Shown here: in pieces, positions 18-18,815 of the stretch
Layout of the letters: every line of letters begins with the position of its first letter
Numbering within the stretch: position 1 is the stretch's first letter
Sequence record: MT708547.1
Length of the DNA: 64,000 nt
Reading direction: 5' to 3' (one strand)
Program-made: the position numbers and the translations under genes
The notes under the pieces: model-generated
Told to the model about the DNA's origin: nothing
What the model saw: only the letters and a program-made list of their open reading frames with translations
Database searches by the model: none

Positions 18-31
18 GCACCCAGTGGGCT
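18..31 (-). repeat. Short-RNA core element (AGCCC-ACT-GGGTGC on - strand) at extreme left end
   Basis: gcacccagtgggct = reverse complement of family core; promoter unclear. Confidence 0.6.
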
Positions 32-149
32 ACATTTGTAACTATTCAGTACTGAATAATTCAATGCATATATTATTTCAGTACTTAATCATTAGCAAAC
101 TATTAATTTCAATATCTCCTTTAGATAATATTTCGTATCTTATATTAAC

Positions 150-208
150 AAAAATCTGAATAGCATGTCAAGAAAAATCTGGATTACCAACGAGAAAAAA
201 TCTGGATT
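150..208. repeat. Three AAAAATCTG(G/A)AT(T) repeats (another at 989-1000)
   Basis: 150-161, 172-185, 194-208; core AATC-TG-GATT is an inverted repeat. Confidence 0.7.
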
Positions 209-270
209 TTAAAAATTTTGAAATGTCGTTTATAGTTCAGGAAAAAAATGAAATTATAACAAGAAAATTG

Positions 271-299
271 TTGACATGGATATGCTGCCATTATATAAT
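271..299 (+). promoter_or_regulatory. Consensus sigma70 promoter
   Basis: TTGACA-17-TATAAT. Confidence 0.9.
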
Positions 300-305
300 G
301 TAATC

Positions 306-720
306 CTCAAGACGAGAGAATGTTCTCTCATAGAAAATGCGAAGAAGCCGAGTTTATCTGTCCCTGCGTGAGTGGGCTAACATTTGAATAGGACAATACG
401 TAGATGAATGAAAAAGGTTTAAAGGGAAGTATTTGATTCCCTGTAGTATAGTTAATGAGTTAGTACTGATATAGTTTAATCATTGAGTACTACTGTCGCA
501 AAGGGAAACCTTTGGCTTCCATGGGGAGTGATGACAGAAGGGCATTATCCTCCATATAGAGTTACTGCGAATAACTCCATAAGTTGGGTTGTGGCAAACC
601 TCCTAAAATAGTGAATCTACAGTACTACTGCTTGGTAGTACTGCTTTTAATTTAAAGAATCCTCTCCGCCAAGAAAGGTGCATGTAACTTGAACATGTGA
701 ACTACGGGAACAGTACTGAA
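306..720 (+). ncRNA. Candidate ~400-nt structured ncRNA
   Basis: Perfect promoter, no ORF, many stems (GAGAGAA/TTCTCTC, GTAGTA/TACTAC, CAAAGG-GAAA-CCTTTG, GAGTTA/TAACTC, CAGTACTAC/GTAGTACTG). Confidence 0.55.
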
Positions 721-791
721 TTATTCAGTACTAATTCCTCCCCAAATTCTGGATACAATGATGCTAGGCTTCAGTTAGTACTGAGTGAGAA

Positions 792-901
792 TGATAATGA
801 TTCTCATTTGAATTGGATGAGAATGATTCTCATTTACTATTGCAAATGATAATAGATTGCATTTACGAATGGTTCTCATTCGCAGATGATAATGATTCTT
901 A
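792..901. promoter_or_regulatory. Cluster of 3 strong + 2 weak Fur-box-like sites
   Basis: TGATAAT-G-ATTCTCA 792-806, TGAGAAT-G-ATTCTCA 818-832, TGATAAT-G-ATTCTTA 887-901; weak 847, 864. Confidence 0.75.
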
Positions 902-929
902 TTTGAAATTGATTTTTCCGATTTTTCCC

Positions 930-995
930 ATTAGCCACCCTTCAGCGTAGGGTTAATTTTTCCCCTGCCGAATCGGTTTTATATTTTCAAAATCT
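930..995 (-). ncRNA. Short-RNA family copy A
   Basis: - strand TTGTTT-17-TATGAT (1030-1002); ACCCT-8nt-AGGGTGG core. Confidence 0.45.
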
Positions 996-1036
996 GGATT
1001 AATCATATCAGTACTAACCAAGATAAACAATACCCC

Positions 1037-1051
1037 TTTACAAATCTTTAC
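1037..1051. promoter_or_regulatory. TTTAC-N5-TTTAC box (CpxR/RstA-like)
   Basis: TTTACAAATCTTTAC = revcomp GTAAA-N5-GTAAA. Confidence 0.6.
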
Positions 1052-1077
1052 AAAAAGATTCTAAATGTGAATACAAA

Positions 1078-1092
1078 TGATAATGATTCTCA
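1078..1092. promoter_or_regulatory. Fur-box-like site
   Basis: TGATAAT-G-ATTCTCA. Confidence 0.75.
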
Positions 1093-1099
1093 TTTACAG

Positions 1100-1149
1100 T
1101 ACTGAATACTTTTTCCCACGCCCTGGCGTCTCCGGTTCCTCCCGTCTAT
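1100..1149 (-). ncRNA. Short-RNA family copy B
   Basis: - strand TTGACT-16-TATAAT (1183-1156); CGG-GAGGAA-CCG stem, divergent core CGCCAGGGCGTGGG. Confidence 0.5.
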
Positions 1150-1251
1150 ATAAACATTATACAGTACTGAATAATTAAGTCAATACTATTTTTGCAAAAA
1201 GATTAAAATAAAATACTTGCAATCCTGGTTAGTACTATATTATAATGTTTA

Positions 1252-1300
1252 CAGTACTGAGAAAGTGCTTTTGCCCGCTAGGGTGCTGGGGAGTATGCGT
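1252..1300 (+). ncRNA. Short-RNA family copy C
   Basis: TTGCAA-18-TATAAT (1217-1246); GCCC-GCTA-GGGTGC-N6-GTAT. Confidence 0.55.
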
Positions 1301-1304
1301 TAAA

Positions 1305-1319
1305 TGATAATGAGAATCA
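1305..1319. promoter_or_regulatory. Fur-box-like site between convergent copies C and D
   Basis: TGATAAT-G-AGAATCA. Confidence 0.65.
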
Positions 1320-1334
1320 TTTACAGTACTGGAC

Positions 1335-1370
1335 GGATTTTCCCACCCTCGGGGGTCTCTTTTTGTCTAT
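1335..1370 (-). ncRNA. Short-RNA family copy D
   Basis: - strand TTGATA-16-TATAAT (1404-1377); CCCC-GA-GGGTGG core. Confidence 0.5.
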
Positions 1371-1409
1371 GTAGTAATTATACAGTACTGAGATACTATA
1401 TCAAGTCTC

Positions 1410-1424
1410 TTTACAAATCTTTAC
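1410..1424. promoter_or_regulatory. TTTAC-N5-TTTAC box
   Basis: exact TTTACAAATCTTTAC. Confidence 0.6.
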
Positions 1425-1522
1425 AAAGCACCCGGGGAGATTTTTCTTTACAATAAAAGTACTTGCATAATTCTTTCAGTACTGACATAATGACTACATC
1501 AACCAATTAGGAGTATTACCAG

Positions 1523-1735
1523 ATGGCTACCATTACGACCCTGTTAAAAAATGCAAAAACTGTATTATTCAGTGATGACGAACATACCAACGTGGATATC
1601 ACTGGAGTTAAAAACCTGTTGGATATCAAAAAGATGTTTTCTATTCATGGCAAACTTACGCGTGTTGGCACGTTCGGAAATAAAGTATGTTACCGCCTTT
1701 CAAGTGATTATAATTTCACACTAACTTTACTGTAA
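1523..1735 (+). CDS. Hypothetical protein, paralog of C-terminal half of 4362-4721
   Basis: SD + promoter; LKNAKTVLFxDDE shared. Confidence 0.85.
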   Translation: MATITTLLKNAKTVLFSDDEHTNVDITGVKNLLDIKKMFSIHGKLTRVGTFGNKVCYRLSSDYNFTLTLL

Positions 1736-1798
1736 AAGTACTTGCATAATTCTTTCAGTACTACTATTATATATTCATACCAAAACAGGAGAACTACT

Positions 1799-1969
1799 AT
1801 GAAATATGCATACTCTTATTTTATTGTAAACGGTGAACGTTTGACCATCGGCCAGGCCGCTGTAAAACATGAAATCATTTGCGATGATCTGGCGAAGATG
1901 CTACCAGGTGAAACGCAAGAGTTTTACAAAGGCTTTCAGAAAGTCGTTGTAACACGTTGCGAAGATTGA
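1799..1969 (+). CDS. Hypothetical protein (56 aa)
   Basis: AGGAG SD before ATG 1799. Confidence 0.75.
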   Translation: MKYAYSYFIVNGERLTIGQAAVKHEIICDDLAKMLPGETQEFYKGFQKVVVTRCED

Positions 1970-2034
1970 TCCAGTACTTGGGGCGGAAACGCCCCTAAAA
2001 CGTCCTGTAACGCATTGTAAGAGGTTTTTATAAT

Positions 2035-2262
2035 ATGGCTATAGAAGTTAACGCTGGGGATATAAAGTCGGCTGTACTGCGTACCCTGAAAGCATACGGC
2101 AGAAAGCTGAATGATCGCAACGTTCCCTATTATTTCCTTGCTGCTACTCATAAAATGGCAATCGCTGAGGCTCGCGGGTGGTTGAATGATCGCAGTACTG
2201 TAAAGAGTACCAGAACAAGAAACGCAATTGAGCGATGGATAAAAGAATTAGAACATTTTTAA
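2035..2262 (+). CDS. Hypothetical protein
   Basis: ORF with GAGG SD, followed by terminator. Confidence 0.7.
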   Translation: MAIEVNAGDIKSAVLRTLKAYGRKLNDRNVPYYFLAATHKMAIAEARGWLNDRSTVKSTRTRNAIERWIKELEHF

Positions 2263-2282
2263 TAATTCAGTACTGAAATTAT

Positions 2283-2306
2283 AAGGGGAGTTAATTAATT
2301 CCCCTT
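2283..2306 (+). terminator. Hairpin terminator
   Basis: AAGGGGAG-TTAATTAA-TTCCCCTT. Confidence 0.55.
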
Positions 2307-2319
2307 TACAAATCTTTAC
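2305..2319. promoter_or_regulatory. TTTAC-N5-TTTAC box 10 nt upstream of -35
   Basis: exact match. Confidence 0.6.
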
Positions 2320-2363
2320 AAAAGAATGGTTGACATAGTATTCCAGTACTGGTATTATGTATT

Positions 2364-2415
2364 CATAGACAGAACAAGTCTTTGGCCCACCGGGTGCGGA
2401 GGAGTATATATTAGA
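2364..2415 (+). ncRNA. Short-RNA family copy E
   Basis: TTGACA-17-TATTAT (2330-2358); GAC-AGAACAA-GTC; GCCC-ACC-GGGTGC-N6-GTAT. Confidence 0.65.
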
Positions 2416-2420
2416 TTGAA

Positions 2421-2441
2421 TGAGAATGATAATGATTCTCA
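2421..2441. promoter_or_regulatory. Extended Fur-box-like site between convergent copies E and F
   Basis: TGAGAATGATAATGATTCTCA. Confidence 0.75.
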
Positions 2442-2451
2442 TTTACTGTAC

Positions 2452-2499
2452 TGAATATATTTCCGCACCCTTTTGGGCTTTTCGATTACTTTCTACTTG
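2452..2499 (-). ncRNA. Short-RNA family copy F
   Basis: - strand TTGCAT-16-TATACT (2533-2506); GCCC-AAAA-GGGTGC. Confidence 0.55.
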
Positions 2500-2538
2500 T
2501 TAATAAGTATACCATAATCAGTACTGAATGCAATGGTC

Positions 2539-2553
2539 TTTACAAATCTTTAC
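2539..2553. promoter_or_regulatory. TTTAC-N5-TTTAC box
   Basis: exact match. Confidence 0.6.
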
Positions 2554-2650
2554 AAAAGAAAATAATTATAAAAAGTACTGAAAAAGTACTTGACGCAATA
2601 ATGTAGTACTGGCATAATACATCCATACCAAACAGAACGGAGTAACTAAA

Positions 2651-2938
2651 ATGTTTAATGAAAATGATCATATTGTTAAAGAGTTTTCTTTCAGTAAGCC
2701 GATCCATTTAGAAAACGGTGAAACGCTGGACAATAAATTTTATGGTAGTATTATTAAGCGTTATACATCGCGGAGTAGTACTGGAATTTTGTGGGAAGTG
2801 AATAAACAGTACAATGGTAATTCGCTGGTTGTCAATGAGTGGGAAAGTTATGCAGTAGCTGAAATGGATTTTTCAAACTTCATTACTGAATCTTTGAACG
2901 ATGATATTTTTTACAAGTTCACGGCGGAAAGGGTTTAA
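2651..2938 (+). CDS. Hypothetical protein
   Basis: cassette promoter + GGAG SD. Confidence 0.85.
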   Translation: MFNENDHIVKEFSFSKPIHLENGETLDNKFYGSIIKRYTSRSSTGILWEVNKQYNGNSLVVNEWESYAVAEMDFSNFITESLNDDIFYKFTAERV

Positions 2939-3054
2939 AAAGTTTTAAAGAGTACTTGACAACATAAACCAGTACTGTATAATGTATTGCATAGAAAGGA
3001 GATTCCAGAATAATGGAATCTCCGATAAAATAAACTAATCAGGAGTTAATTACC

Positions 3055-3666
3055 ATGAACGTTATCGATACCATCTATTCTAAATCTTTCGATGAACTGA
3101 ATGCAGAGCAGAAAGAAAAAGCAATTGATATTATGCGGGATCTGGAACGTCACGATTCAGATCCATTCTGGGCACAATTAATTAATGAAGATAAACGCGA
3201 ATTAATGAATAATGAATATGGTTTTACTGATACTGTAATTCATTATAGCGGCTTTTGCTCACAAGGTGACGGGGCGTCAATTAGTACTGAATCAATCGAC
3301 GCAGAGACGTTTTTACGCAAAATTAAAGCATGGTCGAAATTCCGTGTATTGCATAAACATTTCAATGATGGTACAATTACATTAAAGATCGAACGCAACG
3401 ATCATCGTTATTCTCATGAAAATACTGTTTCTGGTGTGGTGGATCTGGACTACGGCACTGAATTCACTGCTAAAAAGGAAGAGAAAGCGGAAGAACTTGA
3501 AACGCTTTTGACTGAAACTATTCGTGATCTTTCACGCCAGCATTATCAGGTTCTGAGCGATGAAAACGATTATCAAAATAGTGATGAAGCATTGATTGAA
3601 TTGATTAATGCAAATGATTATAATTTCAAAGTGGATAGTACTGGTAACGTATTGGGGTTAGCGTAA
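3055..3666 (+). CDS. Acidic conserved phage protein (YSGFxSQGDGAS ... SDEAxxExIxANxYxF family)
   Basis: motifs recalled from a widespread phage/plasmid family often loosely annotated 'antitoxin'; function unproven. Confidence 0.6.
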   Translation: MNVIDTIYSKSFDELNAEQKEKAIDIMRDLERHDSDPFWAQLINEDKRELMNNEYGFTDTVIHYSGFCSQGDGASISTESIDAETFLRKIKAWSKFRVLHKHFNDGTITLKIERNDHRYSHENTVSGVVDLDYGTEFTAKKEEKAEELETLLTETIRDLSRQHYQVLSDENDYQNSDEALIELINANDYNFKVDSTGNVLGLA

Positions 3667-3960
3667 TGACTAAATTATATATTCGTTTCTGTTTTGCCTG
3701 GTACTTGTATAATCTACAAAATGGTTATACAGTGAAATAATATATATTTTTACTGATATACTGTAAAACGTCCTGTAAACGATTATGGGACGTTTTAAGG
3801 AATATTGGTACAATGTTAGTACTGAATGATTTAAAACGGCTTACAGTGGCTTACAGAGCGTTTAAAAAGTACTTGACGCAATAATGTAGTACTGGCATAA
3901 TTCATCTATACCAAATAGCAAAGGGAATCAGTACTGATTCCAATATAAGGAGTAACCAAA

Positions 3961-4275
3961 ATGAGTACTAAAGAACTGAATGTAACTACCAACACTTATA
4001 AGACGTTATGCGGGCGGTTGTTACGTGATTATTACACGGTCGAAATCGAAGAACGCGAATTACCCGAAGATAAACACTATTGGGAAAGTGGTGTGAGTCC
4101 TCTGTTACGGGTAACAACGTCTAAGCATGTTTTCTTTACTTCCCGTATTCATGTTAATAAGCGTGTTGAATTGACTTTCTCTTTCAGTGGTAGTTATAAA
4201 GATCATGAGATATTAAATGATCATATCGTTATTAGCAAATTTATTCAAATGTACGGGGCGGATTCTTTGCTTTAA
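3961..4275 (+). CDS. Hypothetical protein
   Basis: cassette promoter + SD. Confidence 0.85.
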   Translation: MSTKELNVTTNTYKTLCGRLLRDYYTVEIEERELPEDKHYWESGVSPLLRVTTSKHVFFTSRIHVNKRVELTFSFSGSYKDHEILNDHIVISKFIQMYGADSLL

Positions 4276-4361
4276 GTACTTGACAATGCGATCCAGTACT
4301 GTATAATGTATTACATCAAAGGGGATACATAGGGTATCCCTGATTTAAAGGAGTAGCGACT

Positions 4362-4721
4362 ATGCGAGCTTTTAACGTTTATAAGAATGACAAAAAAATT
4401 GACGTTGTTTATTATTCCGAAGTAATGACGGCAAAAGAAGTAACCGATTTGCTGAATAGCCGCGGTGAATACAACGGCGAAGTAAAAGCATTTCGGTCAT
4501 TGAATAGTGCGAATATTCGCACAGTACTGAAAAATGCTAAAACTGTTTTATTCAATGATGACGAATATTTTAATAAAGATGTTACGGGTATTAAAAACCT
4601 GGAAGATCTGAAAAGCCTTATTGGTATTAAAGGCAACGTATACAAAGTGGGGGAAGTCGGATCTCGCCATGAATATAAATTAGCTGGAAGTGATTATAAA
4701 TTTTCAATCCTGGTAATGTAA
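4362..4721 (+). CDS. Two-domain hypothetical protein
   Basis: N-term AFNVYKNxKxIDxVxY domain + paralog of 1523-1735. Confidence 0.85.
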   Translation: MRAFNVYKNDKKIDVVYYSEVMTAKEVTDLLNSRGEYNGEVKAFRSLNSANIRTVLKNAKTVLFNDDEYFNKDVTGIKNLEDLKSLIGIKGNVYKVGEVGSRHEYKLAGSDYKFSILVM

Positions 4722-4722
4722 T

Positions 4723-4926
4723 ATGAAAGTTTATATTTTGGAAGTGGAAGAATGTAATTCATATTCTTACAGTGGTACACTATCACGTGTGGAGGCGGTA
4801 TTTGCCAGCGAGAAAGAAGCCCACACTGCCGGGATTCAAAAAGTAAAAGAAGGCTATGAAGGTTATAGCGTCGATGCTTATGATATTCAGGGCGATCTTT
4901 CAGTACTGAAAAATATGTTGACATAG
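4723..4926 (+). CDS. Hypothetical protein
   Basis: directly follows upstream stop. Confidence 0.75.
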   Translation: MKVYILEVEECNSYSYSGTLSRVEAVFASEKEAHTAGIQKVKEGYEGYSVDAYDIQGDLSVLKNMLT

Positions 4927-4949
4927 TTTTTTGTTACTGTATAATAATT

Positions 4950-4974
4950 AGGGGATCAATCGATCCCCTTTTTT
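4950..4974. terminator. Hairpin terminator
   Basis: AGGGGATC-AATC-GATCCCCT-TTTTT. Confidence 0.8.
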
Positions 4975-5043
4975 GTTTCAGTACTTAATTAATAATAGAT
5001 ACACTACCGCACCCTATGGGTTAGTGCCTTGTGTCCGGCTTAT
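4950..5043 (-). ncRNA. Short-RNA family copy G
   Basis: - strand TTGACT-17-CATAAT (5078-5050); GCC-GGACACAA-GGC; ACCC-ATA-GGGTGC-N6-GTATCTA. Confidence 0.65.
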
Positions 5044-5089
5044 GTAGTTATTATGCCAGTACTGCGAATATAAGTCAATAGGTAGTTTT

Positions 5090-5104
5090 GTAAAGAAGTG
5101 TAAA
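5090..5104. promoter_or_regulatory. GTAAA-N5-GTAAA box 11 nt upstream of copy G -35
   Basis: GTAAAGAAGTGTAAA. Confidence 0.6.
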
Positions 5105-5307
5105 TGCACAGGAAGCATTGTAAGGCGTTAATCTGTTGCTGGTGGCTGATAGTATAGAGAAGTGTTTTAGATTGATTGTAGGCCGTTGTAGGCGTTTATG
5201 AATAGTAAAGTACTGATATTGTTTAATGATCCCGGTATGTGCAAATTATTTTAATTTTTTTCATATTAGGTATTGACGGATTGTGTCAGTACTGGCATAA
5301 TGTATCA

Positions 5308-5375
5308 CATAGAGCGACGGGCAAGACAAGTAGTCAACCTGTAAGACATACGAAAACCAGGTGACGTTGCACTGA
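5308..5375 (+). ncRNA. Candidate ~70-nt three-way-junction RNA
   Basis: TTGACG-17-CATAAT (5273-5301); GCGACG/CGTTGC enclosing GAC/GTC and ACCTG/CAGGT. Confidence 0.5.
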
Positions 5376-5442
5376 TTCAGTACTGAATAATACATAACAT
5401 CTAAATGTTGACAGTACTGAAAAAATGTAGTATAATGATTCA

Positions 5443-5585
5443 CAGAAAGAAGCAATCCAGTAAGCATGGATTAGTGATAAACGTAGACCGGAATCACGAA
5501 AAACTTTCAAGGAAATACCCTTATATAATAAGGGAAGCGTTAAGCGTAGAACGTAAACGCGAAAGTCCTAGCCTTGAACTGAAAA
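5443..5585 (+). ncRNA. Candidate ~140-nt multibranch RNA
   Basis: TTGACA-17-TATAAT (5408-5436); AATCCA/TGGATT, GTGAT/ATCAC, TTCAAGG/CCTTGAA enclosing CCCTTA/TAAGGG and GCGTT/AACGC. Confidence 0.6.
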
Positions 5586-5708
5586 AGTAAACAAGGTAAT
5601 TTAAGAAAAAAGATTTAAAAAAGTAGTTGACAAGTACTAACGAGAATGAGATAATCTCTCTCGTTGAAACAAACAAACAATCTTAATCAAAACTTAAAGG
5701 TGAATAAA

Positions 5709-6209
5709 ATGGCTAAACTGAATTCTGTTGTTGTTGCTCTGATCGCTGGTGATGTTGCTGCTCTGAATGCTTCTTTCGCGTCGGTATCGATGGAAGATAT
5801 GAAAACTGTTCGCAATAACTTTAACGAGTTTTACTCGAAGTTTAAAGCGGCAAATGAAGCGGCGGAAGCGGCTGCAAAAGAGCGTAAAGCACAGATCGAA
5901 ACCGAAACGAAAGCCCTGGTAGATGCCCTGGTAACTGCTGGCCTGGATCTGGAAATGGCCGCCGAAGTCGCCAGCCAGAAAATGGCGGTTAAATATCCCG
6001 AACTGGCCGCGAAGCCGGAAACTGGTAAATCCTGGTCGTTTGAAACGGTATTCGTTAACCTCGACGGCGAAAAACTGGAAATTGGCACTAAAGGCAACAA
6101 AGGCAGCATGAAAGCACTTAAAGCGGCACGCGACGCAATTGCTGCCGGCGAGTACAAAGATCGTGCTGAATGGATCGCCGCACACGCCTGGACTGAAACC
6201 GAAGCGTAA
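5709..6209 (+). CDS. H-NS/MvaT-like nucleoid-associated protein
   Basis: Ala/Glu coiled coil ending ALVTAGLDLE (H-NS MLIADGIDPNE-like); C-term GEKLEIGTKGNK (MvaT GEVIETKGGN-like); high-expression codons. Confidence 0.5.
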   Translation: MAKLNSVVVALIAGDVAALNASFASVSMEDMKTVRNNFNEFYSKFKAANEAAEAAAKERKAQIETETKALVDALVTAGLDLEMAAEVASQKMAVKYPELAAKPETGKSWSFETVFVNLDGEKLEIGTKGNKGSMKALKAARDAIAAGEYKDRAEWIAAHAWTETEA

Positions 6210-8518: not shown

Positions 8519-8881
8519 ATGACTATGTTTGATAAAGTTTTATTTTCTGATAACACCTCTGAAACCGAGATCCCGGAAGCGGTAAAAGCTTTTGCTCAAT
8601 TAGTTGCCCAGCGTCAAACTGATAATTACGACGGGCCTTATTCTTTCCTTACTGAGATTAGTAAAGGCAAAAAGTTTATTAAACTTATTCGCCGCGAGAA
8701 GTGGAAAGATAACGGACAATTAACAGGCGGATCGGTATTTGCCTTTATTGATCCCGATGGTAACATTTACAAATCAGCGACAGCTAAAGCACCAGCTAAA
8801 GGCATTCGCGGAAATGTTAACATCAACGGCGGCGGCGATGCAATCGGGCGTGATGGTTATATTCGTTACTTTCGTAATTGA
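8519..8881 (+). CDS. Conserved phage hypothetical protein (GKKFIK..SVFAFID..GNIYKxAxxKAPAKG.RGN family)
   Basis: motif common in T4-like phages; function unknown. Confidence 0.8.
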   Translation: MTMFDKVLFSDNTSETEIPEAVKAFAQLVAQRQTDNYDGPYSFLTEISKGKKFIKLIRREKWKDNGQLTGGSVFAFIDPDGNIYKSATAKAPAKGIRGNVNINGGGDAIGRDGYIRYFRN

Positions 8882-8932
8882 CAAATCTTTACAAATCCAG
8901 GGGTTGACTTCGGTCGCCCCTTTTGTTATTAT
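8878..8932 (+). promoter_or_regulatory. TTGAC-N5-TTTAC box + terminator/promoter hybrid
   Basis: GGGGTTGAC-TTCG-GTCGCCCC-TTTT containing TTGACT-17-TATTAT. Confidence 0.8.
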
Positions 8933-8937
8933 ATATT

Positions 8938-8995
8938 CATACCACAGAGCAAGTGGTTTAGCCCACAGGGTGCCGAGATGTATCTATAGTTTAAT
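8938..8995 (+). ncRNA. Short-RNA family copy H
   Basis: ACCAC-AGAGCAA-GTGGT; GCCC-ACA-GGGTGC-N6-GTATCTATAGTTT. Confidence 0.7.
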
Positions 8996-9039
8996 GATTT
9001 GAAGTACTGAAAAATAATTATAAAAAGTACTTGTTAGAC

Positions 9040-9061
9040 GTGAATTCTTTTAAGAATTCAC
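9040..9061. repeat. Perfect 10-bp palindrome inserted in promoter cassette
   Basis: GTGAATTCTT-TT-AAGAATTCAC. Confidence 0.8.
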
Positions 9062-9697: not shown

Positions 9698-10073
9698 GTA
9701 CTTGACAATATAATTCAGTACTGTATAATGTATTACATCAAAGGGGATACATAGTGTATCCCCAATTAACAGGAGTAACCCATATGTCTAGTATCGTTAT
9801 TAATGAAACCTTATTATCTGTTACTTATGATGATGCGAGTATTTTTCCTGGTAATGATTATGGGTATGAAATTCCCGTAAAAGTTGAACTCGATCAAAGT
9901 GTCGGCAATCCCGATGATATTAAACGCACTATGGTGGTTAAAATTGGTGATATCACTTTATTGCCCAGTGATATTGATCATATCAAAAGTATGATTGATC
10001 GTGCAAATAATATCGCTGAAACCTTCAAATAAGTACTTGACAATATAATTCAGTACTGTATAATGTATTACAT
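9694..10073 (+). repeat. 45-bp perfect direct repeats (9694-9738, 10029-10073) flanking one gene
   Basis: ataagtacttgacaatataattcagtactgtataatgtattacat x2. Confidence 0.9.
9784..10032 (+). CDS. Hypothetical protein
   Basis: AGGAG SD. Confidence 0.85.
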   Translation: MSSIVINETLLSVTYDDASIFPGNDYGYEIPVKVELDQSVGNPDDIKRTMVVKIGDITLLPSDIDHIKSMIDRANNIAETFK

Positions 10074-10125
10074 AGAAAAGAGATTCCAGTACTGGAATCT
10101 CTAAGATAACCCAAGGAGATTAAAA

Positions 10126-10339: not shown

Positions 10340-10384
10340 AAAACCAGTACTTGATTTAATTATTGAGTACTGGTATTATATATT

Positions 10385-10437
10385 CATTGGCAGATAAGCC
10401 GCAGCCCACAGGGTGCCGAGATGTATCTATAGTTTAT
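10385..10437 (+). ncRNA. Short-RNA family copy I
   Basis: TTGATT-17-TATTAT (10351-10379); GGC-AGATAA-GCC; GCCCACAGGGTGCCGAGATGTATCTATAGTTT. Confidence 0.7.
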
Positions 10438-11920: not shown

Positions 11921-11951
11921 AAAAAGGGGAGACAATGAGTCTCCCTTTTTT
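11921..11951. terminator. Bidirectional terminator
   Basis: A-tract-GGGAGAC-loop-GTCTCCC-T-tract. Confidence 0.85.
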
Positions 11952-12020
11952 GTATTCAGTACTATATATATTTTAGATACAATTTGGCACCCTGTGGGTT
12001 AGTAGCTTGTTCTGCTTTAT
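11925..12020 (-). ncRNA. Short-RNA family copy J
   Basis: - strand TTGACA-17-TATAAT (12055-12027); AGC-AGAACAA-GCT; ACCC-ACA-GGGTGC-N6-GTATCTA; ends at bidirectional terminator. Confidence 0.75.
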
Positions 12021-12146
12021 GTAGTAATTATATGATAAAGCTGGTGGCTTGTCAACACTTATTTTAAAATAAAAAGTACTGAATAGTACTTGCAAAAAGT
12101 ATTCAGTACTGTATAATGTTTATATTGAGATTAAGGAGTACTGACT

Positions 12147-12866: not shown

Positions 12867-13246
12867 TACTTGACAACTGATTTCAGTACTGTATAATGTT
12901 TATCAAAGGGAATGAATAATTCATTCCCAAATAATCAAAGGAGTTTTGCCATGATCTATATTATCAAAGTATCCCCGACTGTAGGCAAATCAGAAGTTGT
13001 AGCCGTCATCACTTCCCTGGAAGCGAAAGATCTTCATACGCCGTTTAATGTATGGGTGGAGGATAATTTCGGCCAATTCAGTACTGCTGAATATATCGAA
13101 CAATTCGCCGTACCGGATACTGGTAAAATCAAAGTGGATCGTATCCTGGATTTTGATAACAGTAATTATTTTTAAAAGTACTTGACAACTGATTTCAGTA
13201 CTGTATAATGTTTATCAAAGGGAATGAATAATTCATTCCCAAATAA
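12865..13246 (+). repeat. 70-bp perfect direct repeats (12865-12934, 13177-13246) flanking one gene
   Basis: identical promoter+hairpin cassette. Confidence 0.9.
12951..13175 (+). CDS. Hypothetical protein
   Basis: AAGGAG SD. Confidence 0.85.
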   Translation: MIYIIKVSPTVGKSEVVAVITSLEAKDLHTPFNVWVEDNFGQFSTAEYIEQFAVPDTGKIKVDRILDFDNSNYF

Positions 13247-13262
13247 ACAAAGGAGTTTTATC

Positions 13263-13999: not shown

Positions 14000-14008
14000 T
14001 TTAAAAAA

Positions 14009-14041
14009 GGGGTTGACACAGGTCAGCCCTTTTGTTATTAT
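14009..14041 (+). promoter_or_regulatory. Terminator/promoter hybrid
   Basis: GGGGTTGAC-ACAG-GTCAGCCC-TTTT containing TTGACA-17-TATTAT. Confidence 0.8.
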
Positions 14042-14046
14042 TAGTA

Positions 14047-14100
14047 CATAGCAAGAACAATGCTCAAGCCCACAGGGTGCCGAAGTGTATCTATAGTTTA
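14047..14100 (+). ncRNA. Short-RNA family copy K
   Basis: AGCA-AGAACAA-TGCT; GCCC-ACA-GGGTGC-N6-GTATCTATAG. Confidence 0.7.
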
Positions 14101-14218
14101 TGTAGTACTGAATCATTAATTTTTCTTGACAATTGGTTTAGTACTGGATATAATAGCCGCCATTGAATACAGAACGGGAAATTAGTACTAATTTCCCTTA
14201 CAGGAGGATTTTAAAAAA

Positions 14219-14485
14219 ATGGCCTATCATACACCACATAGACATTTCATTGATAAACGCGGTATGGCTTTTAAAGCAATGAGTGACAATCGTAACACAC
14301 AAATGTACTTTAAAGATATGACGTTAGAAGAAGCTATTGAAGCTGTAAGGAATGATCGTAAGCTTTCCAAGAAAGTTGCATCAGTACTTAATGCTTTTTG
14401 GTTTGAACGTACTACCAACAAAGAATACAAAGAAAAGATGATTGCACTTGGTAAAGTAGTACGAGAAGAAAAATTATATCTTTAA
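14219..14485 (+). CDS. Hypothetical basic protein
   Basis: AGGAGG SD. Confidence 0.85.
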   Translation: MAYHTPHRHFIDKRGMAFKAMSDNRNTQMYFKDMTLEEAIEAVRNDRKLSKKVASVLNAFWFERTTNKEYKEKMIALGKVVREEKLYL

Positions 14486-14580
14486 GTACTTGACTATGTG
14501 ATTCAGTACTGTATACTGTACTTATACCAAACAAAAGTAAAGGGAATCAGTACTGATTCCCTGTAAAGGAGATAGACCAA

Positions 14581-14688
14581 ATGAAACAAGCAAAATTTAA
14601 TTCAGAAATAAAAGCAGCAAAAGCACACAAAGTACAGTTAGTAGTACTGGTTATTGTATCAATCTTTTTGCTGTGCAACATCGGCTAA
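14581..14688 (+). CDS. Small membrane peptide (35 aa; not in ORF track)
   Basis: full cassette + AAGGAG; hydrophobic C-terminus. Confidence 0.6.
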   Translation: MKQAKFNSEIKAAKAHKVQLVVLVIVSIFLLCNIG

Positions 14689-14768
14689 AATAATTATTAC
14701 AGTACTATTGACAACACGTGATAGTACTGGTATAATTACTTTACCAAATCAAAAAGGAGTAACCAAAA

Positions 14769-15044
14769 ATGCGGATTAAACTTACTAATGATGAGATTCA
14801 TTCAGTACTTACTACCAATATGCAGGACTGGAAAAAGTACGCTGATATCGAAGAAGTCCAGGAACTCAATGATGATTTGAGTGTAGATGAAATTATCACT
14901 ATTTGCTCATCTCAATTCTTTGATGATATCAATGATGAAGAGCAAGATGTATTTGATATCATGGAAAAACATTTTATTGCGTATGATGTTTTCCCGTATA
15001 CTCGCCAGGCTTATATTCTTATTCACAACATTTATAACAAATAA
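14769..15044 (+). CDS. Small acidic protein
   Basis: 20 D/E vs 7 K/R in 91 aa. Confidence 0.85.
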   Translation: MRIKLTNDEIHSVLTTNMQDWKKYADIEEVQELNDDLSVDEIITICSSQFFDDINDEEQDVFDIMEKHFIAYDVFPYTRQAYILIHNIYNK

Positions 15045-15056
15045 GGAATAATAATC

Positions 15057-15422
15057 ATGGAAAAAGAATTTAAAATCAAATACAATATCAGTACTGATTG
15101 TGGTTTTGAAGTACCAGAAGAAGATCAAGAACGTCTTAATGATGTTATTATGATTGACATTTCAAATAAAATCATTCAAGGCTACCGCGAAGGTGAATTG
15201 TGTGAATCGTTGATGGATCAATTCGATGAAGTGGAAACATTTTATCGTGGCTGGTGGAGCATCGAAGAAGTTCACAAAGTACACGAATACCGTGTATTCT
15301 GGATTAACGGCGTTAATGATATCGAAGATATCATTGTAAAAGAAAGTAGTGAATCCGCCGCCATTCAGTACTTTAAAGATCACTACCCCAACAAACGTTA
15401 TCACCATTTAGAAAAAATTTAA
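15057..15422 (+). CDS. Acidic hypothetical protein
   Basis: AAGGA SD. Confidence 0.85.
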   Translation: MEKEFKIKYNISTDCGFEVPEEDQERLNDVIMIDISNKIIQGYREGELCESLMDQFDEVETFYRGWWSIEEVHKVHEYRVFWINGVNDIEDIIVKESSESAAIQYFKDHYPNKRYHHLEKI

Positions 15423-15485
15423 AAAGTACTTGACACCTAATATCAGTACTGACATAATTACTTTAAACAAACAAGGTATTACAAA

Positions 15486-15872
15486 ATGAAAAAGATTATT
15501 CTGGCTGTTACTCTGATGGTTTCCGCTTCCTCTGTGATGGCTGTTAATCTCAATGAATTAACTGATTTCAGTAATACTATGCGTGATCGTTTCAGTGTAC
15601 CAGATCACATTGCAAAAGCCGAACAAGCTCGCAACGCTGGCATGAAATGCAATGCATTGATGACCGATGAGAAAACGGGTAAACAGTTTAAATCACAATT
15701 CAGTACTGGCCCGGAGGATAAACCGATGGTATCAGGTAACGATCTGACTTATCATGAAGAAGATGATACCGGTAGTACTACACTGGTTATCAATAAAAAT
15801 ACTGGTAAAGGTTTTATTACTATTATGGACGCAAGCCAGGTAATTGCAACTGGTAACGTAATTTGCAAATAA
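15486..15872 (+). CDS. Exported (signal peptide) protein
   Basis: MKKIILAVTLMVSASSVMA; two Cys. Confidence 0.8.
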   Translation: MKKIILAVTLMVSASSVMAVNLNELTDFSNTMRDRFSVPDHIAKAEQARNAGMKCNALMTDEKTGKQFKSQFSTGPEDKPMVSGNDLTYHEEDDTGSTTLVINKNTGKGFITIMDASQVIATGNVICK

Positions 15873-15957
15873 AATACTTGACAACATAATCCAGTACTGA
15901 TATATTAATACGCATAGGGGCAAACAACTTGCCCCACTAAACAAAAGGAACTACCAA

Positions 15958-16314
15958 ATGATTACTAAATTCTACGCTACTCGTGAACTGGCTCGGAACG
16001 TCGCTCGTGAAGAAGGTGAAACCTTCAAAGATATGGGTAAAGATTCCCCTGCTGGTCAACGCTGGGCAGTACTGTTCCGCGAGGTCAAAGACCTGGTAGA
16101 AAACGCTAAAGCCGTTGAAATGAACGTTCCCACCAAAGAAGATAAAGAACTGACTGATGCCCTCGCCGCTGCATTCTCCGCGATGGATAAAGCCGCAGCG
16201 GTAGTACTGAAAGTACCGGAATTTGTTACCAGAAAAGTGCATTCAGTACTACAAAATAAATTCAATGGTAAACAGGTTCAAGTGTTTACTAAACGTAAAA
16301 TTCCGGTCATGTAA
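15958..16314 (+). CDS. Hypothetical protein
   Basis: cassette + SD; followed by terminator. Confidence 0.85.
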   Translation: MITKFYATRELARNVAREEGETFKDMGKDSPAGQRWAVLFREVKDLVENAKAVEMNVPTKEDKELTDALAAAFSAMDKAAAVVLKVPEFVTRKVHSVLQNKFNGKQVQVFTKRKIPVM

Positions 16315-16337
16315 AATCTGACTATTACAGTACTAAC

Positions 16338-16360
16338 AAAGGGGCTTCAATGCCCCTTTA
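16338..16360. terminator. Hairpin terminator
   Basis: AAAGGGGC-TTCAAT-GCCCCTTT. Confidence 0.75.
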
Positions 16361-16422
16361 AACGTCCTGTAAGCCATTCTAAGAGGTTTTACATGAAAAA
16401 GGTACAATTACACAAAGGAGTA

Positions 16423-16641
16423 ATGAAAGTTCATTATAATGCCCCGCAACGCATTATAGATAGATCCATTGAACTAGCCAATCAATACCTAGCTGGTGGA
16501 TTAACTCCCAGGAAGTTAAGCAACGGGAAGTTATATGTAATCAACGTTGATACTAATAATCGTATAGTAATCAAAGGTGAAAGCATATCACTGTATGAAC
16601 ATCAACAGTATAACAAGAAAGTAAAAAATATTAGTAGATAA
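16423..16641 (+). CDS. Possible ParE/RelE-like small toxin-fold protein
   Basis: ..Y..G...PRKL....Y.INV...RIV......L.EH..YN pattern; AAAGGAG SD. Confidence 0.35.
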   Translation: MKVHYNAPQRIIDRSIELANQYLAGGLTPRKLSNGKLYVINVDTNNRIVIKGESISLYEHQQYNKKVKNISR

Positions 16642-16720
16642 GTATTGACAACTGATTTCAGTACTGCCATAATGTATACATACAAGGCAATACCGCCTAA
16701 TAACATAGGAGTAACTGAAA

Positions 16721-17143
16721 ATGAAAAAATCAACTAAAATTGTCTTAGGTGTATTTGTTGTTCCGGCAGTCGCCTTTTTTACTTGTGCTATGATTTTTGG
16801 TGATGCTTCTCGGGTTGCCGCAAAAATCGAAAAAGAAAAACAAGTCCAGGCACAAGTCAAGAAAGAAGAAAAACCAAATTATAACACTGTATGGGAAGCA
16901 ATTTGCCATACCAGTACAGGTAAACGAATTTCCATCCTTACAGCAATGAATAATGGAAAATCAATCGTCGGAAACGAATACATGGAAGTGACTTCCAGTA
17001 CTGGTAAAGAATTCGTAATGACGAACTATAATAACAATAATGTTGCAATTGTTACACAGGATTTTAAAGGTAATGCAGTACTTGAATATCATACGGAATA
17101 TGAAGTAATATTTGCAAAATGCACGTTTGAATGGGGTGCATAA
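16721..17143 (+). CDS. N-terminally membrane-anchored protein
   Basis: hydrophobic IVLGVFVVPAVAFFTCAMIF. Confidence 0.8.
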   Translation: MKKSTKIVLGVFVVPAVAFFTCAMIFGDASRVAAKIEKEKQVQAQVKKEEKPNYNTVWEAICHTSTGKRISILTAMNNGKSIVGNEYMEVTSSTGKEFVMTNYNNNNVAIVTQDFKGNAVLEYHTEYEVIFAKCTFEWGA

Positions 17144-17163
17144 AAATAAAAAAAAATCAAAAA

Positions 17164-17198
17164 GGGGGGTTGACATATGTCAGCCCCTTTGCTATTAT
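17164..17198 (+). promoter_or_regulatory. Terminator/promoter hybrid
   Basis: GGGGTTGAC-ATAT-GTCAGCCCC-TTT containing TTGACA-17-TATTAT. Confidence 0.8.
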
Positions 17199-17203
17199 TA
17201 ATA

Positions 17204-17252
17204 TCAAGAAAACAAGCTAACCCACAGGGTGCATAAATGTATCTATAGTTTA
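17204..17252 (+). ncRNA. Short-RNA family copy L
   Basis: ACCC-ACA-GGGTGC-N6-GTATCTATAGTTT; stem 1 degenerate. Confidence 0.6.
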
Positions 17253-17324
17253 TTAAAGAATTTTAGTACTTGACAACGTAGTACAGTAGTACTAAAATAT
17301 CTACATACAAAGGAGATTACCAAA

Positions 17325-17909
17325 ATGAACAAACATCTTAAAGTACTGAATAAATGTAAATCCAATACCGAAATGTTACTGTACTGTTACAAAAATTTAA
17401 TTAAACTCGGGAGAGGTTCATCCAGGACAGTATTTTTGTTAACAAAAAATAAAGTACTGAAAGTTGCTCATAACCATATTGGCAACCAACAGAATACAGC
17501 AGAAATCACTGCATGGTTGTATATTGATTATGACCGCTATTATAATAAACGTTTTTTCGCTAAAGTGTTCCCTGATATGTCGCATTTCAAAGATGTATAC
17601 ATAGTACAGGAGTACTGCGACAATATCAGTACTAAAGAAGCGAAGCCATATATTGAACATTACAAAGATTCACGTACAATTAAAAATGAAAGGGCTAAAC
17701 GCTTCCACACGGCGTTAAGAGATGTAGATAATACCCTTAACTATAAAACGCTGGTGGACTTAAACATGGGCAATATAGGCCGTTCTGTAAGGGGTGCAAT
17801 CAAAATCCGTGATTATGGTTTGTCTGAACATATTGCTAAACAGTACCGAGAAGCCCGCTTCCAATACCAGAAGCTCAAAAGTATTAGTAAAATAAGTATT
17901 GATTTATAA
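17325..17909 (+). CDS. Minimal Ser/Thr protein kinase-like protein
   Basis: LGRGSSRTVF (Gly loop), VLKVA (Lys), AE (alphaC), YIVQEY (hinge), DLNMGNIG (catalytic D..N), IRDYG (DFG-like). Confidence 0.75.
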   Translation: MNKHLKVLNKCKSNTEMLLYCYKNLIKLGRGSSRTVFLLTKNKVLKVAHNHIGNQQNTAEITAWLYIDYDRYYNKRFFAKVFPDMSHFKDVYIVQEYCDNISTKEAKPYIEHYKDSRTIKNERAKRFHTALRDVDNTLNYKTLVDLNMGNIGRSVRGAIKIRDYGLSEHIAKQYREARFQYQKLKSISKISIDL

Positions 17910-17975
17910 TTTCAGTACTGGTATAGTACTTTCACAGGGGAGATAATCTCCCCAAATCACAAAGGAGATTTTACC

Positions 17976-18338
17976 ATGAGTACTAAACCATTTGTAACCA
18001 CTCGTTCCAATCTGACTGAGATCTATGTACATGGTGGATATGAGGAAACGTATGTCACTGGTATTATGGTAGAATTCCATCAGGGTTATCGGTTTATGTT
18101 GGTAGATTCAGAAATCTATCATACCCAACAAGATAAACATGGTTATGTCAATAAGTACTCCACCGATGAAGTACTGAAACGCCTGGATAATAAAATTAAA
18201 CAAATTCAAAAACATCTTGACAACGGCGGAAAACTTAATCATTTACTTTGGGATAGCTTAGATCCCTGCTACGGTTCGGATGCATATGGTAAAAGCCGTG
18301 ACACTGCAATGAAAGTACTTAAAGATTATTTCTTTTAA
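17976..18338 (+). CDS. Hypothetical protein
   Basis: cassette + SD. Confidence 0.85.
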   Translation: MSTKPFVTTRSNLTEIYVHGGYEETYVTGIMVEFHQGYRFMLVDSEIYHTQQDKHGYVNKYSTDEVLKRLDNKIKQIQKHLDNGGKLNHLLWDSLDPCYGSDAYGKSRDTAMKVLKDYFF

Positions 18339-18429
18339 GTATTGACATAGGTTATCAGTACTGTATAATGTTTTGCATACACAAGAGATTCCAGTGCTGG
18401 AATCTCTAATCTAAAGGAGAATACCGAAA

Positions 18430-18711
18430 ATGATTACTGGTCACATTACTAACTATGCAAAACGCCGCGATGTAGAAATCGAAGTACTGAAAGCTGGCGA
18501 AGTTGACGATGACGCCCAGGTATGGTTCTACACCGCAGACAATGATTGTGAACCAGTACTGATGTACCTGATTAATAATGATGGTTCTCTTACTTATCGT
18601 AGCAAACTGATGAAGTCACTGGAAGATATGCCAGCACATATCAATAATAAAGAAGTACTGAAACGCGTAATCTGCTACATCTCAGACCAGCACAAAGCGG
18701 ATATGATGTAA
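18430..18711 (+). CDS. Hypothetical protein
   Basis: cassette + SD. Confidence 0.85.
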   Translation: MITGHITNYAKRRDVEIEVLKAGEVDDDAQVWFYTADNDCEPVLMYLINNDGSLTYRSKLMKSLEDMPAHINNKEVLKRVICYISDQHKADMM

Positions 18712-18724
18712 TCTTTACAAATAT

Positions 18725-18758
18725 GGGGGTTGACTAATGTCAGCCCTTTTGGTATTAT
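18725..18758 (+). promoter_or_regulatory. Terminator/promoter hybrid
   Basis: GGGGTTGAC-TAAT-GTCAGCCC-TTTT containing TTGACT-17-TATTAT. Confidence 0.8.
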
Positions 18759-18763
18759 ATATT

Positions 18764-18815
18764 CAATCCAGCGAAATGGTCTAACCCTCAAGGGTGCCGA
18801 TATGTATCTATAATT
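18764..18815 (+). ncRNA. Short-RNA family copy M
   Basis: CCA-GCGAAA-TGG; ACCC-TCAA-GGGTGC-N6-GTATCTA. Confidence 0.65.

Follow-up and report, generated by a model that had tools for sequence, protein, structure and literature searches.

The first 64,000 bases of the genome of Klebsiella phage Muenster (MT708547.1; genus Alcyoneusvirus, a RaK2-like jumbo phage of 346,937 bp), called the window below, carry a family of short structured modules, each of which directly follows its own sigma70-like promoter. Over bases 1-6000, the window is 100% identical to the Muenster record, beginning at record position 1. Eleven copies are distributed over both strands of the terminal repeat (bases 1-20030 in the record annotation, a PhageTerm prediction), corresponding to 22 module genes per packaged genome. 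The module combines a variable 5' hairpin (H1) with a constant core made of two helices, H2 and H3, which share the same GGG and are therefore mutually exclusive; this exclusive pair is the family-specific part. The reading that we prefer, tentatively and with somewhat less than even confidence, is that the modules may be expressed as abundant early small RNAs acting in trans.

The other genes of the terminal repeat are nearly all small open reading frames (ORFs) on the + strand, mostly without assigned function and driven by sigma70-type promoters. Such genes are as expected of an early region; a preliminary description of this DNA had proposed that it is the first to enter the cell. In 20 terminal-repeat proteins, Pfam recognises only a kinase, a ParE-like toxin and the N-terminal domain of an H-NS-like protein, besides domains of unknown function.

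Module copies, their surroundings and their distribution

The core CCCN3GGGTGCN6GTAT, on which the preliminary description was built, occurs nine times in the window with at most one mismatch, whereas shuffled sequences gave none, and the coordinates agree. A covariance model (CM) trained on 66 copies from seven phages, namely Muenster and six relatives, finds 11 copies in the window, each with 28-67 bits and every one within the terminal repeat, and the best score of any other site in the 64 kb, with filters off, is 13.8 bits. The 64-nt model spans begin at 1247, 2358, 8934, 10377, 14041, 17193 and 18757 on the + strand, and at 4985, 11963, 2441 and 1319 on the - strand. A repeated family had thus been rightly recognised, but the 13 or 14 copies counted initially reduce to a robust number of 11: the minus-strand copies proposed at 995 and 1149, the core at 18-31 and a loopless core at 1428-1437 give no CM match even at E<=10. 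The copies and the features associated with them are as follows.

1217..1298, + strand: copy 1; promoter TTGCAA-18-TATAAT (1217-1246); H1 AGTACT/AGTGCT; H2 loop of 4 nt; GGGTGC at 1281; CM span 1247-1310, 30.3 bits; convergent with copy 11
2330..2409, + strand: copy 2; promoter TTGACA-17-TATTAT; H1 AGAC-AGAACAA-GTCT; H2 CCCACCGGG; H3 from 2392; 47.6 bits; convergent with copy 10
8904..8985, + strand: copy 3; -35 box within the upstream terminator hairpin; H1 ACCAC-AGAGCAA-GTGGT; H2 8961-8971; H3 8968-8985; 53.5 bits; terminator-like hairpin (9040-9061) downstream, with a second promoter beyond it
10351..10428, + strand: copy 4; promoter TTGATT-17-TATTAT; H1 (T)GGC-AGATAA-GCC(G), a type common to at least nine phages; 52.1 bits
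14013..14092, + strand: copy 5; -35 box within terminator hairpin 14006-14033; H1 AGCA-AGAACAA-TGCT, identical in seven phages; 63.6 bits
17170..17244, + strand: copy 6; -35 box within terminator hairpin 17163-17190; no H1 stem, only the A-rich tract CAAGAAAACAAGCTAA; 66.7 bits; upstream of a second promoter and the kinase gene
18730..18809, + strand: copy 7; -35 box within terminator hairpin 18725-18748; H1 CCA-GCGAAA-TGG; H2 with the 4-nt loop TCAA; 44.4 bits
4997..5078, - strand: copy 8, opposite to the genes; promoter TTGACT-17-CATAAT; H1 GCC-GGACACAA-GGC; 54.6 bits; reads into the bidirectional terminator at 4950-4969, predicted RNA of about 100 nt
11975..12055, - strand: copy 9, opposite to the genes; perfect promoter TTGACA-17-TATAAT; H1 AGC-AGAACAA-GCT; 57.8 bits; reads into the terminator at 11927-11945, predicted RNA of about 100 nt
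2453..2533, - strand: copy 10, divergent in sequence; H2 CCC-AAAA-GGG; 32.1 bits; convergent with copy 2, for which its reverse complement reads as a small terminator
1331..1404, - strand: copy 11, divergent in sequence; GGGTGG with CCGTCC, a G-C swap in an H3 pair; 28.0 bits; convergent with copy 1; terminator-like score on the reverse complement (1340-1355)
1115..1183, - strand: degenerate relative (the site at 1149); TTGACT-16-TATAAT, then ATAGAC...GACGCCAGGGCGTGGGAAAA; faces a Fur-box-like site; no CM match
18..31, - strand: isolated core CCCACTGGGTGC, 18 nt from the physical left genome end; truncated, with no promoter at the family distance; no CM match
4950..4969, both strands: bidirectional terminator serving the upstream + strand operon and copy 8; the counterpart for copy 9 is 11927-11945
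787-805, 1079-1097, 1306-1324 and 2422-2446, no strand: Fur-box-like palindromes, of which 1306-1324 lies between convergent copies 1 and 11

Judged by eye, the site at 1149 is a degenerate paralogue of the copy spanning 1319-1382, and a site equivalent to the isolated core at 18-31 is found at 30288 in the related genome OU509535.1. As for the initial statement that the copies contain no ORF, GenBank does place small coding sequences over three of the modules or their promoters, namely, CPT_Muenster_001 (1304-1456), 018 (8814-9002) and 034 (14032-14166). These are probably spurious gene calls; the start of CPT_Muenster_034 lies upstream of the predicted transcription start. A mini-ORF of the form ATG/GTG/TTG-TAT-CTA-TAG, reminiscent of the lambda bar minigene, was also considered and rejected, its start or frame being lost in relatives (CCGTCC, CTGTCT and others).

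The assignment of a separate sigma70-type promoter to each copy holds for all 11, with matches to 8-12 of the 12 consensus positions and a spacer of 16-18 nt. The distance from the end of the -10 box to GGGTG is 28-35 nt in every case, and transcription is predicted to start at a conserved CAT, 6-8 nt past the -10 box. Other promoter-like sites are present on the minus strand of the window.

Three genomic contexts can be distinguished. Four copies lie on the strand without genes, two of them solitary (4985-5048 and 11963-12026) and two in convergent pairs, and every solitary copy is directly downstream of a + strand terminator. In the first context, that of the solitary opposite-strand copies, AGUACUG and then an A-rich stretch lead from the module to the upstream operon's bidirectional terminator, in agreement with the initial view that minus-strand copies reach terminators. 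The same layout, with a conserved UAGUACUGUACAAAUAAACAG, is present in Salmonella phage Munch, Erwinia phage Hallingskeid, Pectobacterium phage CBB, Cronobacter phage GAP32, E. coli phage BF17 and metagenome contigs. In the second context, that of the solitary same-strand copies, the -35 box falls in the terminator hairpin of the upstream gene and the -10 box in its T-run; such compact overlaps (8899-8932, 14006-14041, 17163-17198 and 18725-18758, with the -35 box in GGGGTTGAC...GTCAGCCCC) are kept in all relatives. A second promoter and the next gene follow after 40-90 nt, with an intervening terminator-like hairpin only at the 8934 copy. Termination is found only where read-through would be antisense, and same-strand copies continue into the next promoter and gene. 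The third context comprises the convergent pairs near the left end (1247/1319 and 2358/2441), which have cores spaced by 80-91 nt and lie on either side of Fur-box-like palindromes. Convergent pairs are kept in every phage examined, either around a palindrome or, in CBB, GAP32 and BF17, overlapping directly.

With regard to distribution, the relatives that supplied copies are Munch, Hallingskeid, CBB, BF17, GAP32 and Klebsiella aerogenes phage fENko-Kae01. The preliminary description had proposed to build a covariance model and to run it on jumbo-phage genomes; the model returned 10-13 copies in the corresponding region of each of the seven phages, which come from seven host genera, with a total of 79 copies, 75 of them distinct. 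In OU509535.1, a complete unannotated relative of 347,546 bp that is about 95% identical to the window across its first 5 kb, it finds 11 copies, all at 31,491-48,880 (17.4 kb, the terminal-repeat equivalent), and none in the remaining 330 kb. Nor does the bare motif CCCAYNGGGTG occur in this genome beyond that stretch and its left edge. A sensitive BLAST search with one copy as query returned 60 phage records, all from RaK2-like jumbo phages of Escherichia, Klebsiella, Salmonella, Cronobacter, Pectobacterium and Erwinia, except for Brochothrix phage matches limited to the promoter. A loose pattern found 80 loci in IMG/VR, among which only jumbo-phage contigs pass the CM, including a Yersinia Eneladusvirus and a 109-kb metagenome contig. 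Occurrence in small phages was rejected, since about 70 single pattern matches on small IMG/VR contigs all fail the CM, and so was a host or prophage origin, no similar DNA being found in 5,426 complete E. coli genomes; one typical module variant is absent from 185,579 GTDB reference genomes. The module family is common to all RaK2-like genera sampled and not peculiar to Muenster.

The family had initially been presented as unrecognised, and the databases agree. Rfam 15 gives no match at the gathering score in the 64-kb window. At E<=5, bases 1-20100 yield sub-threshold, terminator-driven matches of which none is relevant on the modules; the sole one touching them is a chance microRNA match across a convergent pair. 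The element was not found in the literature searched, where the CBB and fEgEco12 genome papers do not mention it and the module sequence string retrieves unrelated primers only; related loci sought through the protein of the kinase gene returned RaK2 alone. We therefore treat the element as an undescribed structured-RNA family of the phage small or leader RNA type, unusual within it for the many copies, the core with two states and the repertoire of conserved 5' types.

Helices of the module

About 20 stem sequences occur at the H1 position, for example ACCAC/GTGGT, AGCA/TGCT, GCC/GGC, GGAG/CTCC, GTCA/TGAC and TCCTG/CAGGA, around purine-rich loops that nearly all end in AA. A hairpin of at least 3 bp is formed at this place in 60 of the 75 distinct copies, compared with 22.4 +/- 3.5 in shuffles. 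In the model-fitted alignment of 68 distinct copies, where the H1 register was set with a second CM from seeds of identical geometry, 94.8% of the H1 cells are paired, double changes occupy 108 cells (36.5 in shuffles) and the covariation score reaches 0.41 (0.13 in shuffles); the copies are a mix of paralogues and orthologues, so that cell counts, here as for H3 below, exceed the number of independent events. An unfitted alignment of 15 hand-picked copies of the same geometry has all cells paired, which results from the selection, and three to five pair types at each of the four pairs, which does not. A blind calculation of mutual information over all column pairs recovered H1 and nothing else. 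Together with the CM, this covariation supports the initial notion of a multicopy, promoter-coupled RNA element with compensatory changes.

The covariation of this first stem, already pointed out in the preliminary description, is thus real, but the stem is missing in about one quarter of the copies (17 of 68, including 17193-17256), where an A-rich tract such as CAUGAAAACAAUCUAA remains. Nor is the hairpin specific to the family. Ordinary gene-proximal early promoters in this region begin likewise, with CAT, A-rich sequence and a strong hairpin, without the H2/H3 core; a 5' hairpin being general in early transcripts here, H1 covariation does not define the family. Clustering of the H1 region gives about 12 types, each kept across genera: AGCA-AGAACAA-UGCU is identical in seven phages, (U)GGC-AGAUAA-GCC occurs in at least nine, the stemless CAUGAAAACAAUCUAA occurs in five, and UCCA-GCGAAA-UGG is invariably combined with a 4-nt H2 loop, while the H3 tetraloop varies freely within one H1 type. 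Furthermore, the stretch of copy 8 (span 4985-5048) is conserved over 48-70 nt at 90-96% identity in Erwinia and E. coli phages despite unalignable flanking DNA. Both features indicate that H1 diversity is ancient and maintained.

The generality of the 5' hairpin raises the question of whether the module is a generic stabilising 5' leader, carried by a duplicated terminator-promoter cassette whose core is kept by descent and weak constraint and serves no dedicated function. Besides the resemblance of ordinary early leaders, the movement of terminator, promoter and module as one cassette would fit such a scenario. We consider it improbable: the core is near-invariant across phages of seven host genera whose flanks have diverged past alignment, the copies on the noncoding strand have nothing to stabilise, and the gene-proximal leaders lack the H2/H3 core.

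Strong hairpins of 8-10 bp are present, after CAT and an A-rich stretch, at the beginning of the 5' untranslated regions of ordinary early genes (2983-3040, 4307-4345, 9729-9765, 10064-10105, 12897-12930, 18369-18410 and others). They read as intrinsic terminators on the minus strand, and may stabilise the mRNA as well as stop antisense transcription.

H2 is the hairpin R-CCC-AYN-GGG-U, with a loop of 3 or 4 nt. It is almost invariant, so that covariation says little about it; CCC/GGG is replaced by CCU/AGG in three copies from three phages, and no one-sided changes are seen. H3 was missed in the preliminary description, which had noticed that GTAT follows the core at exactly 6 nt. This spacing is explained by pairing: GGGUGC and the next purine are complementary to UGYRUCY beyond a 4-nt loop, often GAGA or GAAA, so that the GTAT belongs to the 3' arm of H3. 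This helix came to light by testing complementarity to the invariant GGGUGC and not through a blind search; for a random conserved heptamer, full complementarity at a suitable distance would have a chance of about 1% according to our own rough estimate from the base composition of the window. In register, 88.2% of 525 H3 cells are paired, compared with 30-55% in six slid registers, and variation of the 3' arm is limited to changes that still pair with G or U. A C-G to G-C swap is found in the three copies of the window set that carry the 5'-side G (three of three; four of five when IMG/VR copies are included). H3 can be regarded as well supported by these comparisons but not as proven. Folded alone, H2 and H3 have mean energies of -3.1 and -3.65 kcal/mol, respectively, and the minimum-energy fold of the combined segment contains H2 in 37 of 75 copies and H3 in 30.

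G-U pairs make up 43% of the H3 cells, which means that H3 can form in the sense RNA only, and neither in duplex DNA nor in the antisense strand. This bears on the possibility that the conserved letters are a DNA-level signal, either a promoter for a phage-modified polymerase in the manner of T4 middle promoters, with an activator box CCCAYNGGGTGC centred near -30 and, 11 nt further on, a -10-like TATAGT, or the operator of an early-gene repressor. A -10-like hexamer (TATAGT, TATAAT, TATTAT or TAAAAT) does lie past H3 in the seven best copies of the window, and the box-to-hexamer spacing resembles that of the T4 MotA box. The most damaging observation is that the remaining 330 kb of OU509535.1 lack the box, whereas a promoter class should precede many genes. 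Across the family, A and T reach only 73% and 55%, respectively, at the key -10 positions, and insertions of 1 nt are tolerated in the H2 loop, a change of length that a duplex-DNA site would poorly tolerate. The changes in CCC/GGG are compensatory, and the variation in H3 is wobble-compatible on the sense strand alone; both orientation and distance to the sigma70 promoter are fixed. Sense-strand-specific constraints, an obligatory promoter and fixed polarity point to a function at the level of RNA or transcription, and a DNA-level signal appears very unlikely.

A function in transcription itself could be exerted in cis, and this is the main rival explanation. The module would then be a promoter-proximal pause, attenuator or insulator, in which the polymerase is held by nascent H2 some 48-50 nt past the start and set free once H3 forms; paused or densely initiating polymerase would insulate early units at terminators, or allow loading of a phage elongation factor. 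The comparison relies on the pause consensus G-10/Y-1/G+1. In the column counts, an invariant pyrimidine-purine step follows the end of H2 by 10 nt; G is invariant at -10, U occupies -3 in 87% of the copies and G occupies -2 in 57%. This geometry is similar to that of hairpin-stabilised pauses. The position +1 of the putative pause is A in 68% of the copies and not G. The fixed distance from the promoter, the exclusive nature of H2 and H3 with near-equal predicted energies, and the constant association with terminators, including same-strand -35 boxes inside terminator hairpins, would all suit a cis-acting element. So would the minority of relatives' copies in which a U-run directly follows H3 and reads as an intrinsic terminator, but in most copies the tail after H3 is mixed A/U rather than a U-tract, and a terminator scan of the window flagged none of the H3 helices. 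The ops motif is no feature of the family and no boxA lies nearby. Opposite-strand copies have no downstream gene and yet are followed by a terminator, and the conservation of about 12 H1 types across genera is left unexplained. We regard cis action as a serious possibility, although an unlikely one overall.

Proposed early small RNA and other possible functions

According to the reading that we prefer, that of an early trans-acting small RNA, each copy would be a small RNA gene at which the host sigma70 RNA polymerase starts from a strong promoter. The first 55 nt or so of the RNA would fold into the functional module, composed of a type-specific H1 (or A-rich tract) and the bistable H2/H3 part. 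The RNA itself would be the product, and 11 genes per repeat with near-consensus promoters would bring it to a high level in the first minutes after infection. Its action would be in trans and stoichiometric: a single conserved factor, of the host or of the phage, would bind the constant H2/H3 core, and the RNA would serve as a decoy, sponge or scaffold. The core would represent the handle, and H1 may add specificity or stability.

The layout of the solitary opposite-strand copies, with promoter, module and terminator in succession, appears to be that of a classic small-RNA gene. Copies of this kind have no gene to serve and are closed by a terminator, as expected if the RNA is the product, whereas a cis-acting leader would regulate nothing at such places. 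Moreover, 22 copies per genome, near-consensus promoters and confinement to the repeat suggest that a high early dose is needed, which suits stoichiometric action on an abundant partner.

Several observations weigh against a trans-acting RNA. While a promoter is present in 11 of 11 copies, a terminator lies behind the two solitary opposite-strand copies, and behind the equivalent copies of relatives, but not behind most same-strand copies, where a discrete small RNA would require processing. H3 rests mostly on one-sided, wobble-compatible variation with few double changes, RNAalifold alone returns H2 only, and the thermodynamic stability of the module is unremarkable (z-scores from -2.5 to +0.5). 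Among the 20 terminal-repeat proteins searched with Pfam there is no RNA-binding protein and one H-NS-like protein. The rest of the phage genome holds no complement of 12 nt or more to the H1-H3 core, with matches only to the ubiquitous AGTACT-containing flanks, and long antisense pairing to phage RNAs is consequently not the mode of action. Finally, the fixed promoter-proximal position and the two predicted exclusive helices would fit a cis-acting transcription element equally well.

The RNA could also act where it is made, as a replication primer. It would form a persistent R-loop in the AT-rich DNA downstream, in the manner of T4 oriF and oriG or ColE1 RNA II, with the convergent pairs as bidirectional origins. 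The succession of a promoter, a G-rich RNA segment and AT-rich DNA is compatible with this scheme, as are the convergent pairs near the genome end that are kept in all genera and the status of RaK2-like phages as distant T4 relatives (PMC5259590). Such a role seems quite improbable, for 10-13 origins in 20 kb would be unusual, and the covariation of the 5' hairpin and the many wobble pairs of the helices suggest a free RNA that folds, not a hybrid. Origin motifs, of DnaA type or other, were not seen, no search having been aimed at them.

A more ambitious version of the trans-acting small RNA is a programmable repertoire, in which the H2/H3 handle would bind one conserved protein, of host or phage, and the 12 or so H1 types would steer it to different host RNAs or proteins, resulting in an RNA-guided takeover of the host, launched from the terminal repeat in the first minutes. 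We see this as a long shot.

RaK2-like jumbo phages infect Klebsiella, E. coli, Salmonella, Cronobacter, Pectobacterium, Erwinia and Yersinia, and are candidates for phage therapy and biocontrol whose early genes are mostly of unassigned function. With at least 20 gene copies per packaged genome behind strong host-type promoters, the module RNAs would rank among the most abundant early phage products. Action in trans would point to a host factor which these phages need to recruit or neutralise, and action in cis would define how early transcription units are insulated. Either way, the module provides an annotation motif for RaK2-like genomes and a reason to drop the three probably spurious coding sequences, and its size of about 55 nt makes it a small and tractable object for RNA-protein work.

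Neighbouring features and known systems

The terminal repeat contains further features of interest. Fur-box-like 19-mers, matching GATAATGATAATCATTATC at 16 of 19 positions, occur at five sites (at most three mismatches) compared with 0.11 expected, all in the first 2.5 kb. They lie between or just downstream of convergent module promoters, and likewise in Munch, fENko-Kae01, Hallingskeid, the Yersinia phage and metagenome contigs. Judging from their placement, they could mediate control of module RNAs by iron and Fur, or titrate host Fur. The hexamer AGTACT is found 272 times in 64 kb, where base composition predicts about 21; the 347-kb relative has 945 occurrences, with a peak of 76-82 per 10 kb in the terminal repeat; it borders the -35 (AGTACTTGAC) and -10 (CAGTACTGTATAAT) boxes of many promoters and follows most modules. 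The sequence CTTTACAAATCTTTACAAA, consisting of two TTTACAAA units one helical turn apart, has five exact copies, located at about 1030-2560 and, in one case, at 8-12 kb. It precedes several promoters by about 45-55 nt, in one orientation or the other, and could act as an upstream element of these promoters or bind a factor.

Strong sigma70-type promoters followed by ORF-less, seemingly structured stretches are also found outside the family (271-480, 5273-5400 and 5408-5620, all +), and these are possibly additional noncoding RNAs. Directly after this cluster of noncoding units, gp011 (5709-6209) carries an H-NS N-terminal oligomerisation domain (Pfam E = 1.3e-5) and is H-NS/StpA-like. The repeat also has toxin-antitoxin-like genes (3055-3666 and 16393-16641), with a YeeU-like antitoxin according to a GenBank note, for which Pfam gives no match, and a toxin annotated as YafQ-like, in which Pfam recognises a ParE-like domain (E = 3e-9). 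The final terminator of the repeat (19772-19799) reads AAGCCCATAGG-ATAAAC-CCTGTGGGCTT; it joins one H2-like arm to a second in reverse complement, as though a convergent pair had collapsed. Three to four direct repeats of CACTATTCTGTAC at about 20078-20145, some 50-115 nt past the repeat boundary at 20030, may be relevant to end formation or packaging.

Several known phage and bacterial elements resemble the module in part. The put RNA of phage HK022, a cis-acting antiterminator that makes the polymerase read through downstream terminators, has in common with it promoter-proximal stem-loops, independence from an ORF and location in a phage early region. It is formed of two long bulged stems and is known only from sites ahead of operons. 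In contrast, the module helices have 3-7 bp, two of them are exclusive, and one third of the copies face a terminator without a gene behind; for the opposite-strand copies, this layout argues against put-type read-through. H1 recalls lambda boxB in that its stem is short and covaries and its loop is rich in purines (GAGAAA, GCGAAA, AGAACAA). Where boxB has a 5-bp stem and a conserved GNRA-like pentaloop bound by an N protein, H1 stems have 3-5 bp and purine-rich loops of 5-9 nt that differ between types; no N-like protein was identified, no search having been aimed at one. The boxA part of a lambda-type nut site was rejected: boxA (YGCUCUUUA-like) has 25 matches at one mismatch or less compared with 26.8 expected, none of them in or beside a module. 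The his-type and ops-type pause signals share with the module a small nascent hairpin 10 nt before a conserved pyrimidine-purine step and a G at -10, but differ by the mostly A-type +1 of the module. The ops/RfaH element itself (GGCGGTAGnnTG in the non-template strand) was discarded, with nine matches at two mismatches or less compared with 8.1 expected, and a single module, copy 8 (5000-5011), carrying one.

Phage decoy RNAs, such as solitary-repeat RNA anti-CRISPRs and pseudo-ToxI repeats, are likewise promoter-driven, ORF-less small structured RNAs that may titrate a host protein. The modules differ in not being tandem and in being kept in phages whose hosts have different CRISPR types; no Rfam CRISPR-repeat family scores on the region, a comparison made through Rfam families and not with Klebsiella repeats directly. 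A sponge for CsrA was rejected, GGA being found in the H3 loop of only about 55% of the copies and thus being no family feature. A presumed likeness to part of tmRNA or to the 530 region of 16S rRNA is unsupported by any Rfam tmRNA match. In PA5oct, a Pseudomonas jumbo phage and distant relative, RNA-seq identified ncRNA001 and ncRNA002 as highly expressed, ORF-less transcripts of the terminal repeat (PMC7318152). The likeness to the modules, that of noncoding RNA from a terminal repeat, is an analogy only, as these RNAs are single-copy and 236-451 nt long, and homology was rejected with a best CM score of 10.8 bits.

Finally, the solitary opposite-strand copies resemble Hfq-type small RNA genes by a strong promoter, a structured 5' domain, the segment AGUACUG(U)A(C)AAAUAAACAG and a GC hairpin with a U tail. 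The modules depart from such genes by the lack of an Rfam match, by same-strand copies poor in terminators, and by a constant core present in many copies and combined with about 12 conserved 5' types.

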